39,620 nucleotides of DNA from Ministeria vibrans ATCC 50519 (taxonomy: Eukaryota > Protista > Filasterea). This document shows positions 24,959 through 28,556 of the stretch, piece by piece. The translations under genes and the position numbers were made by a program. The stretch covers positions 1-39,620 of the forward strand of contig CALSCP010000390.1 in the NCBI GenBank assembly GCA_943704425.1. The letters run 5' to 3'. The stretch's first letter is position 1. The number at the start of each line of letters is the position of its first letter. Below the pieces are notes generated by a model. That model made no database searches and had not been told where the DNA came from. It was given only the letters and a program-made list of their open reading frames with translations.

Positions 24959-27763
24959 ATGAGTGTAGACAGTCCCACACGACGCACGACGAGAATTGCG
25001 CTGAGTGCCAACGCGGACGGTGCCAAGTGTCTGATTGTCGAAGACAACAATGTAAGGAGGGCGCCAAGGAGGGAGGGGAGCGACTCGGGAGCAATTCCGA
25101 AGCACTCTCCGCGTCAGGGGCGGTGCGTGCATGCGTCTGGTCGCCTCCGAGCCGTCAGCAACACATGTCGGTGCTGTTGCGATGACGGCGCTCGGCTGAG
25201 GCGCCCGCCATGTCTCGTTCTCCCCACTCGCACTTTGTGCGAATCATTGCACCGTCTGTTCCTTTTTCGCCCCACTGCCCTTTCGCGCCTCTTACATTGC
25301 GTCGTTTTTCCTCCCACGCCTATTTGCACGCTATGAGTTATCGGGTTCTCGGCAACAAGACGGTGTCTTTGACGCGCTTCTCTGAGTGACGAATTCCGAC
25401 GGTTTTTTTTTTTACATTCGTCTCGTTTTGTCCACATAGGTTCTTCAACGAGTTATGGGCCAATGGCTGAGTCGCACGACACTCGGCTGTACTCATGTGA
25501 TGGACGGACTCATGGTAGGAAAGGAGGGAAGGGGCTATGTTGCGTGTTTCCGTTGTGTTTCGCGCACTGTGTTATGTGTCGCTTGTCTTGTGCCTCTGAC
25601 ACTTCTGTCTGTTATATTGCGGTGTCCTTTCACCTTGTGTCTCTTCTTGCGCCACTTTTTTTTGTCTCATATACTTTTGTTTCATATACTTTTGTTTCAT
25701 ATACTTTTGTTTTGTATACTTTTGTCTCGTATTCTTTTGTGTAGTTCACTTATGTCTCATGATTATTCTATTTTTCGCATGTCTCTTCTCTCATTTCACT
25801 TGTGTCTCTTTCTCTCAGGCGGTTACTGCATGTCAGCGTGAGAAATTTGACATTATCTTTATGGACATTTGTATGCCCAACATGAACGGCATTGATGCGA
25901 CGCGGACGATTCGAACGGACCCGTCGAGCGCGAACCAGACGACACCCATCATTGCGTTTGCGGGCAATGCAGGTAACGAATAATGCAAAGACAGGAAGAA
26001 AGGAAGAAACAAACAACTTCTTGTGTGTTGATGTGTTTTGCAGAAACTGCTGCCATGGTCTCGGCCGGATTCAACGATGTGCTACAGAAACCCTTTACAC
26101 AGGAACATTTGGTGGCCAAAGTGAACCAATGGGCGCGCCAAGACAAGGAAATGAGTGCTCTCATGAGTGGTCAGTCTGTTGATGCTGCGGCCGAGGTCGA
26201 GCTGGGTCTCTTTGATCCAGCCGTCGAGCAGTCGATTGACCTGTTCGCGGACATTCCCAATTTTCTTGAGACGCTCCAGCAAGTGATGGGCGGAACCGTA
26301 CAGCACTCTGCCGAGCTACAGCAACACCATTTACAACCACTATCTCAAAACAACTTGCCACTCGAGGCACACCAACACCCGGGCGACGGTGCTCTCTCGG
26401 ACTCTCTCATGGGATACGAGTATGCGGCAAATGGCAGTGGCATAGACACGGGAACGGCAGTGGCAGCGGCCGAGGCTGCAGCCACTGCAGCAGCGTACGG
26501 GACACCGTACGAGGATAGAGGAGGGAATGTGGCAATGCAGCACCAACGAGCACCACCACCGTCACAGACGCACACCACGAGTGTACTTGTGGTTGAAGAC
26601 GACAATGTGACACAGCGCGTCGTCACGCAGTACCTTAAGAAGATGGGTGCCAATGTGACTCAGGCCTACGATGGTGCTCAGGCCGTCGAAGCGTGCACCC
26701 AGACCCTCTTTGATGTTATTTTTATGGACATGTCAATGCCCAATGTCAATGGACTCGAGGCTACGCGTGTCATTCGGTATGCGAAAATAATTCATCTTTT
26801 TTTTTAACCCCCCGTCCCCTCTTTTGTTGTAGGTCTCCTGATGGACTCAATCGGTTTACGCCCATGATTGCATTTAGTAGCTATGGCAATGCTAACGAGT
26901 TTAGTCGTCTTGGCATGAATGATTATCTTGCAAAGCCCTTTACAAAGGTATAATGATTGAGATTGGGACACCGCTGAGTGATGGAGAGGAAGATTGGGAA
27001 TTGATGCTGGGTTGACTGCCTTAGACGGATCTGTGTGGAATTGTGGAGAAGTGGACACCGTTTCACTCGCGCAGCACAAGCAGCTCGCCCTCGTCGGGTC
27101 CCGCCAACGGCTCACCAGTCAATGCCAACAACAGCGGCACAGCATCAACAGCAGCGGTAGGGACAGCAGGAACACCCGCCACAAGTGCCTCTACGACTGT
27201 GCCTTCTTTGACAGCACCAGTCGGAGTGGCTGCTGGAAGTGCATCCGCTAGCAATAGCACCACGAGCATGTCAAGTGCCACTGCAAATACCAAAATGAGC
27301 CATGGAACCGCCCCTATTGCTGCAACAACCTCCACCTCTTCTTTGACTCTTCCCGCCACTGTACCATCAAACGCCGTTGCTGCCTCCCAGTCAACTGCAT
27401 CACTCACCCTCATGTCCTCCTCTTCCGACACTTCGGCTGCCTCTCCTTCACTTGACACTTCTCTGGACAATCTCACCTCAAAGACAAGTCGACGTCCCGC
27501 AGCACCGTACCAGCTACAACAACAACAGCCTCCCTCTCAGTCAGCACAGTCATCACAGCAACAGCCTCAACAACAGCAACAGCGCCGATCGTTTTCTCCT
27601 CGCTCTGCCTCTCCACCTTTTTACTCGCCCCATCAGGGTACTCTTAGCGTAGCCTCTTCTCATTTTCAACAATCACCATCATCAACATCTGCTGCTCCTT
27701 TCATGGCCTTGCGCCTATCACAGTCAGCAACAAGTATTGGCGAATCAGTAAGGAATTGTTGTT

Positions 27764-27858
<95 letters not shown>

Positions 27859-28556
27859 TGATTGACACACACCTTATACACTACAGTACTCTGCTCTGTC
27901 GCCTCAGGATGCAACGGGCTCTGCGAGGTCTTCGCGTGGCTCTTTTGCTGGCACCAGTCGCTCTTCATTAGCCTCTCCTCCGCCACTCAATGTGCGAAAC
28001 GACAGAGTGAAAGAGAATTCAATGGAGACTTGATGATTAAGTTTTTTTTTTTTTGGTGTAGATTCTTCCCGGACAATCTCAGTCTGAAGGAACTGTCACG
28101 TCACCCCCACTCTCTCCCTTGTCCGTGAGACACTCGGGTGGACCCGCTAAGAAAATGCGACAGTAAGTGGGAACACATTGTGGTGTAGATTTTTGTAGTA
28201 ATCTAATAATGACTGTGGTCGTATAGTGTGACTGCAGGTCCACCCGCCGCAGTCGATGAGGATGTGACTCCGTCAGGCTACCCTCGACCCTCTCGAGTAC
28301 AGCACAACGACAAAGTATACACGGCAGGAGAGAGAGGAGGGAGAAAAAATGAAGTGAAAGAGAGAGAGAGAGGGGAGAGGAGAGGAGAGGAGAGGAGGGA
28401 AACAAAGTGATAAAGAGATAAAGAGAGAGAACAGAAAGTGATATATCTCTCATCCTCGACTGTGTTGCTTAGGAGCGAGTGAGACGACGGGAGATCTCCG
28501 AAGCTGTTGATGAGTTCCGCCGGTTAGTCCCGGGTTGTTCTGACCGCACCGACAAG
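24959..28556 (+). CDS. Response regulator with two receiver (REC) domains and a C-terminal bHLH domain; 3' end missing
   Basis: Exons 24959-25051, 25440-25514, 25819-25972, 26044-26776, 26833-26947, 27025-27747, 27908-27991, 28062-28162, 28227-28314 and 28473-28556 (2250 nt, open). REC1 CLIVEDN..FDIIFMDICMPNMNG..KPF; REC2 VLVVEDD..FDVIFMDMSMPNVNG..PMIAFS..KPF; bHLH RVQHNDKERVRRREISEAVDEFRRLVPGCSDRTDK. Confidence 0.85.
25668..25742. repeat. 15-bp intronic tandem repeat (CATATACTTTTGTTT), ~5 degenerate copies
   Basis: Directly visible in intron 2 of the response regulator gene. Confidence 0.8.
27765..27856. repeat. (GT)n intronic microsatellite
   Basis: Perfect GT run. Confidence 0.97.

Follow-up and report, generated by a model that had tools for sequence, protein, structure and literature searches.

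Among described systems in which a His-Asp phosphorelay ends in a receiver joined to a eukaryote-type DNA-binding domain, fungal Skn7 and the plant type-B ARRs come closest to the gene analyzed here. Skn7, positioned below hybrid kinases and HPt (Ypd1), carries an HSF-type domain and one receiver. Type-B ARRs, the end points of an HK, HPt, RR relay, consist of a receiver, a long linker and a GARP/Myb output. Tandem receivers are known from bacterial PleD, in which one receiver is phosphorylated, the other acts as an adaptor, and phosphorylation drives dimerization. As for DNA recognition, the structures of Max, USF and Pho4 show that His5-Glu9-Arg13 of the basic region specify CACGTG. bHLH factors form part of the core animal regulatory toolkit, and animals have no His-Asp phosphorelays. 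The holozoan two-component system has so far been catalogued mainly through kinases; Hehenberger et al. 2017 (Curr Biol 27:2043) is reportedly a study of this system. No bHLH protein is known to be controlled by aspartyl phosphorylation that gates dimerization and E-box binding.

We found that Ministeria vibrans, a unicellular relative of animals and fungi, has a real, expressed gene joining two bacterial-style receivers (REC1 and REC2) to an animal-style bHLH DNA-binding domain. The gene lies on the forward strand of contig C390, of which positions 1–39,620 are referred to as the window. Its parts follow one another on a single spliced mRNA: an acidic linker connects REC1 to REC2, from which a conserved KWTPF motif and a long S/T/Q-rich linker, predicted to be disordered, lead to the bHLH domain. 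The product is most plausibly a response regulator in a multistep His-Asp phosphorelay of the eukaryotic type, with a group-B-like bHLH output, although no phosphotransfer, DNA-binding or target-gene data exist for any member of the family.

Gene structure and expression

The gene had been predicted as ten exons with GT..AG introns forming a single open, in-phase frame. Eight of the nine predicted junctions were reproduced outright by RNA contigs, which came from three runs belonging to two studies (X1 and X3 from study P1, X5 from study P2): 25051>25440, 25514>25819, 25972>26044, 26776>26833, 26947>27025, 27991>28062, 28162>28227 and 28314>28473. None of these joints was present in the DNA run X19. 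The ninth junction, 27747>27887, spans a GT repeat and does not appear among the listed joints; we infer it because the RNA contig sizes fit (1890 = 1282 + 378 + 1 + 229). One RNA contig of 2606 letters extends from the 5′ UTR to past the bHLH region, and the contigs connect REC2 with the bHLH exons in a single transcript. It should be kept in mind that these contigs are assemblies rather than single reads, and that rare isoforms are dropped in the process.

The start of the gene had to be revised. The predicted start codon at 24959 falls within a 54-nt GT..AG intron (24915–24968), which is missing from the spliced RNA of all three runs (joint 24914>24969). The mRNA has its first AUG at 24881, in frame with the downstream exons, and no ATG occurs at 24791–24880. 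Exon 0 (24801–24914, the 5′ end near 24801 being approximate) accordingly comprises the 5′ UTR, the start codon and the first base of an Asp codon; it encodes MSLRGEGDSLL, followed in frame by D-SPTRR.

The rest of the original prediction, which had been made from sequence alone, stood up well. Its ten exon boundaries, the single open frame, the phospho-acceptor Asp codons at 25864 and 26727, and a CTAAT motif at 28203–28207 with the next AG at 28225–28226 were all confirmed, and the corresponding acceptor, 28227, is used in all three RNA runs. The frame counted from the predicted ATG is 757 codons long rather than the reported 750. Among the outcomes named as refuting the prediction were transcripts using only an acceptor at 28237 (with a stop at 28259) or bHLH exons belonging to a separate gene. 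The linkage of REC2 to the bHLH exons, which was to be checked in RNA, held in the assembled contigs, and neither outcome was observed there. A minor product lacking the bHLH domain through use of the 28237 acceptor may nevertheless exist, given that contigs would miss rare isoforms.

Receiver domains and linkers

REC1 begins in exon 1 (24969–25051 as spliced), which encodes β1 with the acidic pocket (CLIVEDNN), and continues through exon 2 (25440–25514; α1/β2) into exon 3 (25819–25972), which contributes β3, the phospho-acceptor Asp and β4 (IIAFAG). The first two assignments rest on the frame, RNA and alignment to the family described below. Exon 4 (26044–26776) encodes the end of REC1 (KPFT), the acidic/Q-rich linker and the first 63 profile positions of REC2, including VVEDD and the second phospho-acceptor Asp, while β4 (IAFSS) and β5 (KPFT) of REC2 come from exon 5 (26833–26947), placed by frame, Pfam, RNA and family alignment. 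The profile searches were run with single exons, not with the joined spliced protein. Pfam Response_reg (cut-off 30.2 bits) matched exon 3 with 41.3 bits (E 2e-10) and exon 4 with 68.7 bits in two stretches (E 6e-19), and exon 5 scored 14.6 bits as a fragment (E 0.037).

Both receivers feature an acidic pair (in VEDN of REC1 and VEDD of REC2), a phospho-acceptor within FMD and KPFT at β5, whose Lys-Pro is invariant in the family. REC2 also has the β4 Ser and thus keeps all five catalytic residues. In REC1, the Thr/Ser position of β4 is occupied by Ala, whereas all nine aligned relatives have Ser or Thr there. REC1 is also less conserved than REC2 across the family (38% versus 50% mean identity). 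Its second acidic pocket residue has been lost in five choanoflagellate-type members, and in Amoebidium the acidic pair of REC2 is lost, whereas none of the nine members departs from the phospho-acceptor Asp, Thr/Ser and Lys in either receiver. The proposed dual phospho-inputs are therefore not established: the idea of two inputs may be wrong because REC1 lacks the β4 Thr/Ser here and one acidic residue in choanoflagellates.

Exon 6 (27025–27747; frame, RNA, family alignment) encodes VEKWTPF, a family-conserved motif directly after REC2, followed by an S/T/A/Q-rich linker that is predicted to be disordered; the equivalent linker of P0003, the closest full-length relative, is disordered in an AlphaFold2 model. 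The linker continues in exon 7 (27887–27991), supported by the 27991>28062 joint and the inferred upstream junction, and in exon 8 (28062–28162; frame, RNA), which includes PAKKMR, possibly a nuclear localization signal. The intron before exon 7 contains a (GT)n microsatellite.

The bHLH domain and its missing helix

The bHLH domain is split between two small exons. Exon 9 (28227–28314), supported by family alignment, ends in the start of the basic region, RVQHNDK, which has His5. Exon 10 (28473–28556) encodes the remaining basic region (Glu9, Arg12, Arg13), helix 1 and the loop (ERVRRREISEAVDEFRRLVPGCSDRTDK). The joined sequence RVQHNDKERVRRR contains H5, E9 and R13, and across the family the basic-region His, Glu and Arg-Arg are invariant. 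Although only 28 codons long, exon 10 by itself matched Pfam HLH above the cut-off (22.1 versus 20.7 bits, E 1.3e-4) over profile positions 9–38 of 53. With the family bHLH profile it was the sole match in six frames of the window (E 5e-11). A PDB search with exon 10 alone produced only chance matches, the query being too short. When a family member was used, all PDB matches were weak (E-values: MYC2 0.013, Max 0.029, SREBP 0.38, MITF 0.55). With matches this weak and mixed, no named family, such as Myc, Max, USF, MITF or SREBP, could be shown to be orthologous to the domain.

Helix 2 is indeed missing from the assembly, as had been noted, yet the mRNA carries at least its start. The RNA contigs extend 219–229 letters beyond 28556 and open with K|ATVLKAAVEY, in agreement with the family helix 2, DKATV(L/F)(K/R)..VEY. 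Only the first ten residues could be read, from 30 letters of the continuation, and the stop codon was not seen. No match to the 30-mer, 20-mer or 15-mer of this continuation was found in the whole assembly, nor was the 30-mer found in metagenome contigs, and the family helix 2 profile gave only noise in six frames of the window. A 16-mer match at C245:57084 was considered as a helix 2 exon but dismissed as fortuitous, since the preceding 13-mer has no copy in the vicinity and translation at this site would give AAVEYTERKG-stop, which resembles no helix 2. RNA loose ends, RNA contig sizes and word depth delimit a repeat-rich stretch (28557–28836) from which sequence has been lost, and word depth at 28680–28878 is million-fold. 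The mRNA of the neighboring WDR61/SKI8 gene has about 150–220 letters 5′ of 28837 that are likewise absent from the assembly. With WDR61/SKI8 deprived of its 5′ end at the repeat that also cuts off helix 2, an assembly collapse that truncated two genes is the probable cause.

Structural modeling was performed on P0003, not on the Ministeria protein. AlphaFold2 produced two receiver folds (pLDDT 80–90) and a helix-loop-helix, but pTM for the whole model was only 0.32, and we therefore make no claim about REC1–REC2 packing. Two copies of the P0003 bHLH region (residues 488–565) were modeled as a homodimer with a score of 0.58, compared to 0.02 for the best control; the runs showed at least 78% contact agreement and pLDDT of at least 71. 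Of 30 solved homodimers, 21 attained the score required for a pass, as did none of 23 single chains. The result may, however, stem from the model's memory of solved bHLH dimers.

A family of REC-REC-bHLH proteins in Holozoa

HMMER searches revealed the same architecture in Chromosphaera, Amoebidium, Corallochytrium and four choanoflagellates, as well as in two further contigs. Altogether, we counted ten proteins with two Response_reg domains and a bHLH, whose sources include at least seven named unicellular holozoans. The members from named organisms are those of Chromosphaera perkinsii Nk52 (Nk52_evm16s32), Corallochytrium limacisporum (Clim_evm32s7), Amoebidium parasiticum (EP00123_Amoebidium_parasiticum_P007066), Salpingoeca urceolata (EP00051_Salpingoeca_urceolata_P001164), Didymoeca costata (EP00039_Didymoeca_costata_P013399), choanoflagellate UC4 (UC4_evm1s1188) and Acanthoecidae sp. 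10tr (EP00036_Acanthoecidae_sp_10tr_P011205). The full set of domains was shown by Pfam for seven of the ten proteins (for P0155, from precomputed Pfam domains); the evidence for P0049 and P0121 is confined to the bHLH, which matched a family profile. Full-length relatives score 24.5–57.1 bits for Pfam HLH. A homologue search with the family alignment was dominated by bacterial receivers and added only Nk52, a search with the P0003 bHLH alone returned only P0003 and Nk52, and the ESM Atlas contained only generic receiver clusters.

The Ministeria gene has all the hallmarks of the family, namely two receivers, KW(T/S/R)PF, a linker, HN.KE..RR and DKATV, as judged by exon-by-exon alignment to nine members, profile matches on C390 and the RNA continuation. 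It shares with its relatives the domain order, the motif after REC2, the basic-region residues and the start of helix 2, with identity of 42–46% over the receiver parts and 54% between exon 10 and P0003. It differs in the Ala of REC1, in its linker (about 400 S/T/Q-rich residues versus about 100–200) and in having ten introns; P0003 has none, being a single ORF on a genomic contig. Because the fusion is common to choanoflagellates, ichthyosporeans, Corallochytrium and Ministeria, it appears to be an old link between signaling and transcription.

Components needed upstream were found in the same genome. HisKA was matched at 10 or more loci, most of them on contigs that also have a receiver match, and an HPt domain lies at C245:58794–58910 (30.4 bits), where HTIKGSAG fits the HxxKG motif. 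Away from the HisKA contigs, receivers were matched only on C390, with the REC-REC-bHLH gene, and C2221, with a single-domain receiver. Since the organism has histidine kinases and HPt, phosphorelay input into the bHLH protein is plausible.

Taken together, Pfam matches (for both domain types, obtained exon by exon), RNA and the family uphold the REC-REC-bHLH reading of the original prediction, along with its H5-E9-R13 basic region, helix 1 and loop; the histidine kinases and HPt it proposed searching for are both present. Its assignment of the source to a probable animal relative fits the range of the family as well as the neighboring REV1 gene, whose best matches are from animals and fungi (35–38%), with neither itself nor any close relative among them. 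Its view of the architecture as unusual, with no characterized example known but database entries not excluded, needs qualifying: the architecture recurs in public predicted proteomes, where it is uncharacterized. A common and already described architecture would have refuted the prediction; we found recurrence, but not description. No paper on a receiver–bHLH fusion was found in the full-text literature searched, which excluded the 2017 study by Hehenberger et al.

Discussion

How might such a protein work? We propose that phosphate would pass from a hybrid histidine kinase through HPt to a receiver Asp. For this step we favor REC2 (Asp codon 26727), inferring from its better conservation and its full set of five catalytic residues that it is the likelier target. 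REC1 may contribute another input or serve as an adaptor, in the manner of tandem-receiver regulators. Phosphorylation would alter receiver–receiver packing or dimerization, which in turn would decide whether the bHLH dimer forms for E-box binding. The inferred target is most likely CACGTG because of His5-Glu9-Arg13, but there are no binding data.

Several alternative explanations need to be considered. The two halves might be separate genes fused by chimeric contig or transcript assembly; after all, the evidence comes from assembled contigs, and there are repeats at the locus. Yet this is all but ruled out by spliced GT..AG joints seen in both RNA studies and not in DNA (only 27747>27887 being inferred), by a frame open across all junctions and by ten proteins elsewhere, seven of them from named organisms, with the same architecture, P0003 being encoded in one intron-free genomic ORF. 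The main product might instead lack a working bHLH, either because the 28237 acceptor is dominant, causing a frameshift and the stop at 28259, or because helix 2 has been deleted, leaving a dead tail. The absence of helix 2 from both window and assembly, and an alternative AG at 28235–28236, 10 nt past the used acceptor, could be taken to support this. We regard it as very improbable, considering that three RNA runs use 28227 and read in frame via both bHLH exons into ATVLKAAVEY, that the orthologues have a complete bHLH, and that the neighboring gene is cut short at its 5′ end by the same repeat, which suggests a fault in the assembly.

The other two alternatives concern function. Plant pseudo-response regulators use receiver folds without His-Asp phosphotransfer, and our protein could likewise be a constitutive bHLH factor whose pseudo-receivers serve only for protein contacts. 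The Ala in β4 of REC1 and the acidic residues lost from REC1 in five choanoflagellate-type members and from REC2 in Amoebidium speak for this possibility. It is nonetheless unlikely: REC2 is catalytically complete here, nine members have without exception kept the phospho-acceptor Asp and the Lys in both receivers, and the genome has its HisKA loci and HPt, yet few other receivers that could be their end point. A less likely version, but one that cannot be dismissed, is that the bHLH is phosphorelay-controlled, but is an obligate heterodimer with another bHLH encoded in the genome or recognizes a different site from CACGTG. HLH matches occur 13 more times in the genome, many group-B bHLH proteins heterodimerize, and this bHLH fits no named family. 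Against it stand the homodimer model of the relative, well above its control, and the family-wide invariance of His5-Glu9-Arg13.

The phosphorelay-controlled bHLH factor thus remains our preferred reading. A bolder one can be built on it: REC-REC-bHLH would be the ancestral transcriptional end point of two-component signaling in Holozoa, and in Ministeria almost the sole one. It would have been present before the choanoflagellate, ichthyosporean, Corallochytrium and Ministeria lineages split and have disappeared along with histidine kinases on the animal stem, with Asp phosphorylation directly gating bHLH dimerization and E-box binding. Taken jointly, these claims are slightly less likely than not. 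If the preferred reading is right, the gene gives the holozoan two-component system a concrete transcriptional output and identifies one particular gene that the animal stem has lost.

Compared with the known phosphorelay end points, the Ministeria protein resembles Skn7 in uniting receiver and eukaryote-type DNA-binding domain, but in Skn7 the HSF-type domain is N-terminal to its one receiver, whereas here two receivers come first and the bHLH is C-terminal. The order of receiver, long linker and DNA-binding domain is that of type-B ARRs; these have one receiver, however, and their GARP/Myb output binds DNA as a monomer, while a bHLH must dimerize. In this respect PleD, with tandem receivers placed before an output active only as a dimer, offers a working analogy, even though that output is a GGDEF cyclase and the sequence relationship is limited to the receiver fold. 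With group-B bHLH proteins (Max, USF, MITF/TFE, SREBP, Pho4, MYC2) the family shares His5-Glu9-Arg13, a loop after Pro and a helix 2 of the form K..V...A.EYI, although PDB matches are weak (E 0.013–0.6) and none of those factors has receivers. In the relatives, helix 2 is not followed by any evident leucine zipper or PAS domain. Set beside these factors, the REC-REC-bHLH proteins suggest a new and testable form of bHLH control, by receiver phosphorylation instead of partner choice or ligand-binding PAS domains.

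Gene structure and expression

The REC-REC-bHLH gene is expressed as one transcript that joins two receivers, REC1 and REC2, to a bHLH region. The ten exons of the original prediction, 24959-25051, 25440-25514, 25819-25972, 26044-26776, 26833-26947, 27025-27747, 27887-27991, 28062-28162, 28227-28314 and 28473-28556 (+), all held, with GT..AG introns and a single open frame; they were searched one by one, without a joined protein, and frame continuity was judged from exon phases and split codons. The phospho-acceptor Asp codons at 25864 and 26727 were likewise confirmed, as was the CTAAT at 28203-28207 with its first following AG at 28225-28226, while the codon count from the ATG at 24959 is 757 rather than the predicted 750.

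Transcript evidence comes from RNA contigs of runs X1 and X3 (one study) and X5 (another study), aligned to 24700-30650 beside DNA run X19. All three behave as RNA: their contigs are spliced and show a poly(A) end. For eight of the nine predicted introns, GT..AG joints are present in every RNA run and absent from X19; among them are 28162>28227 and 28314>28473, on which the prediction hinged. The ninth intron, 27748-27886, contains a (GT)n repeat and was skipped by the junction analysis, but its removal follows from the lengths of an X1 contig (record 4), which fit (1890 = 1282 + 378 + 1 + 229). A single X3 contig of 2606 letters runs from the 5' UTR past the bHLH exons. The fusion would have been refuted had transcripts used only the acceptor at 28237, leading to a stop at 28259, or had the bHLH exons formed a separate gene. 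Neither is the case: the acceptor giving 28227 is used in X1, X3 and X5, and RNA joints connect the bHLH exons to those upstream. Use of 28237 was not found in the RNA contigs of these runs, in which minor isoforms may be hidden.

The predicted start codon, by contrast, did not hold. An extra 54-nt intron, 24915-24968, is removed in X1, X3 and X5, and the ATG at 24959 lies inside it. Since there is also no AUG in ~24791-24880, the first AUG of the mRNA is at 24881. From there the protein reads MSLRGEGDSLL and continues in the same frame into D-SPTRRTTRIALS..., and the coding sequence is longer by eight codons. Only a transcript retaining this intron, which lies inside the apparent first coding exon, could use the in-frame ATG at 24959.

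The absence of bHLH helix 2 held for the assembly, but the mRNA carries at least its start. Past 28556/7 the RNA contigs run on for 229 (X1) and 219 (X3) letters found nowhere in the window; translated in frame, the first 30 give K|ATVLKAAVEY, which fits the family helix 2 consensus DKATV(L/F)(K/R)..VEY; it is only this start that is shown. The start has no match anywhere in the assembly (29.7 Mb, 2860 contigs), whether searched as a 30-mer (<=2 mismatches), a 20-mer (<=1 mismatch) or a 15-mer, and a six-frame search of the window with the family helix 2 profile was negative. A lone 16-mer match, on a different contig, is probably due to chance.

The neighbouring gene is truncated as well. A WDR61/SKI8 homologue (one exon matches human WDR61 at E 4e-24) occupies 28837-30023 (+); it is spliced, with polyadenylation near 30023, and starts abruptly at 28837, equivalent to about residue 60 of human WDR61. 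Its RNA contigs carry ~150-220 extra letters 5' of 28837 that are not in the window, so that the assembly lacks its first ~60 codons and 5' UTR. A CT-rich dispersed repeat (unit like CTCTCTATCACTTTGTTTCT; inverted copies at 28395-28420 and 29100-29120) fills 28557-28836 between the two genes, with a word depth in X19 of about 10^6, against about 240 in the flanks. Because independent DNA contigs break within this repeat and two genes lose exons there, an assembly collapse is probable; it is the simplest reading, and would have removed the region between the two genes along with the 3' part of the bHLH gene and the 5' part of WDR61.

Domains and the REC-REC-bHLH family

Both expected domains were detected by Pfam. 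Response_reg matches exons 3 (2e-10), 4 (6e-19) and 5 (0.037); the exon 4 match falls into two stretches, one at the end of REC1 and one at the start of REC2. The prediction would also have failed without an HLH match, yet the 28 residues of exon 10 alone reach 22.1 bits (E 1.3e-4, profile positions 9-38 of 53), above the curated cut-off of 20.7 bits.

With exon 4 as query, an exhaustive HMMER search retrieved the contig's own ORF fragment and proteins with four matching stretches, in which both receivers of each relative align to the REC1 and REC2 parts of the query. The closest relative, P0003, is an intron-free ORF on a genomic contig with two Response_reg domains and HLH by Pfam. Pfam also supports the architecture in Chromosphaera perkinsii (P0155, Nk52_evm16s32; precomputed Response_reg and HLH), Corallochytrium limacisporum (P0004, Clim_evm32s7), Salpingoeca urceolata (P0009), choanoflagellate UC4 (P0021), Acanthoecidae sp. 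10tr (P0054, via its cluster members) and Didymoeca costata (P0076); in Amoebidium parasiticum (P0049) and a transcript contig (P0121) the bHLH was identified with the family bHLH profile. All relatives with an organism label are unicellular holozoans. The fusion is a conserved family, along the whole of which the window exons align, including the KW(T/S/R)PF motif directly after REC2 (here VEKWTPF, opening exon 6); the window bHLH is closest to that of Amoebidium, ...VPGCTDKTDKATVLRKGVEY.

Mean pairwise identity among nine members is 38% for REC1, 50% for REC2 and 46% for the bHLH. All nine keep the phospho-acceptor Asp, beta4 Ser/Thr and beta5 Lys in both receivers; the window gene alone has Ala at the beta4 position of REC1, while the catalytic residues of its REC2 are complete. 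The second acidic residue of REC1 is Pro or Ser in the five choanoflagellate-type members, and Amoebidium REC2 has lost the acidic pair. In the basic region His5, Lys8, Glu9, Arg12 and Arg13 are invariant. The bHLH is group-B-like; the PDB matches of a family member are all weak (plant MYC2 0.013, Max 0.029, SREBP 0.38, MITF 0.55) and allow no assignment to a named bHLH family.

For P0003, used as a full-length stand-in, AlphaFold2 predicts both receiver folds with confidence, along with a helix-loop-helix (helices 503-522 and 532-559, pLDDT about 80-87); disordered linkers join these domains, and the pTM of 0.32 makes the model uninformative on domain packing. A two-copy model of the bHLH (residues 488-565) scores 0.58 against 0.02 for the best control, with contacts agreeing in >=78% and pLDDT >=71 across runs, and so clears a mark that 21 of 30 solved homodimers attain but none of 23 single chains. 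As the family has solved dimers, this outcome may reflect the model's memory of them.

The family is not new to databases, since its proteins are already present, uncharacterised, in public predicted proteomes. No paper on a receiver-bHLH fusion was found in the full-text literature searched, although Hehenberger et al. may already note such regulators. The catalogue of Kabbara et al. (PMC6324907) is confined to kinases, with 11 in Capsaspora and one in Monosiga, and the main text of Suga et al. 2013 does not mention the two-component system.

Two ordinary housekeeping genes share the window, a REV1 translesion polymerase ORF (442-3678, -; IMS, IMS_C and REV1_C domains) and a DIS3/Rrp44-like ORF (30272-32152, +; CSD1 and OB_Dis3 domains). 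The best matches of REV1 are from animals and early-diverging fungi (35-38%); together with the holozoan-protist relatives of the REC-REC-bHLH gene, they would fit an opisthokont protist on the animal side. Parts of the locus also occur in runs under several organism labels and in two seawater metatranscriptomes (shares 0.06-0.28), for which co-culture, host association or cross-contamination are possible explanations.

Phosphorelay components in the same genome

The histidine kinases and HPt protein that a phosphorelay would need were both detected. The assembly contains at least 10 HisKA matches, which probably represent hybrid kinases because most share a contig with a receiver match. An HPt match (30.4 bits) lies at C245:58794-58910 (L017:1324-1803), in an open frame that reads SAHTIKGSAG, the HPt phospho-His motif. 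The candidate HPt protein has a long poly-Asp tail, and a second, weaker HPt-like match is at C1127:42591-42773. With kinases, HPt and a receiver protein in one genome, the relay appears complete. Counts being lower bounds, the only receiver matches found on HisKA-free contigs are the window gene and a small single-receiver protein on another contig (C2221:1355-1700; …DNPVTQRIAEGLIKQMG…FMDIMMP…KPFTKAELYKVVLEHTPKI-stop), and among the receivers found, only those of the REC-REC-bHLH protein are fused to a DNA-binding domain. The small protein, which may act as a free-standing response regulator or as a phosphate sink, is the best match of any other locus to the REC2 part of the family profile (E 1e-32).

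Proposed mechanism and comparison with known systems

What is established is that the architecture is conserved and expressed as one transcript, that the catalytic residues of REC2 are intact, and that kinases and an HPt are encoded in the same genome. The function that we infer is that of a eukaryotic response-regulator transcription factor with a kind of output for which no precedent was found in the literature searched. Phosphate would pass from a hybrid kinase through HPt to a receiver Asp, more likely in REC2 than in REC1, and phosphorylation may change how the receivers pack or dimerise. DNA binding by a bHLH requires a dimer, so that such a change would gate E-box binding. His5-Glu9-Arg13 specifies CACGTG, a rule derived from the Max, USF and Pho4 structures, and CACGTG is accordingly the predicted target here, without binding data. 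By analogy, the nearest functional counterpart for tandem receivers placed before a dimer-dependent output may be bacterial PleD. Among eukaryotic proteins, Skn7 and the plant type-B ARRs come closest; their output domains are HSF and Myb/GARP, respectively, whereas here it is a bHLH.
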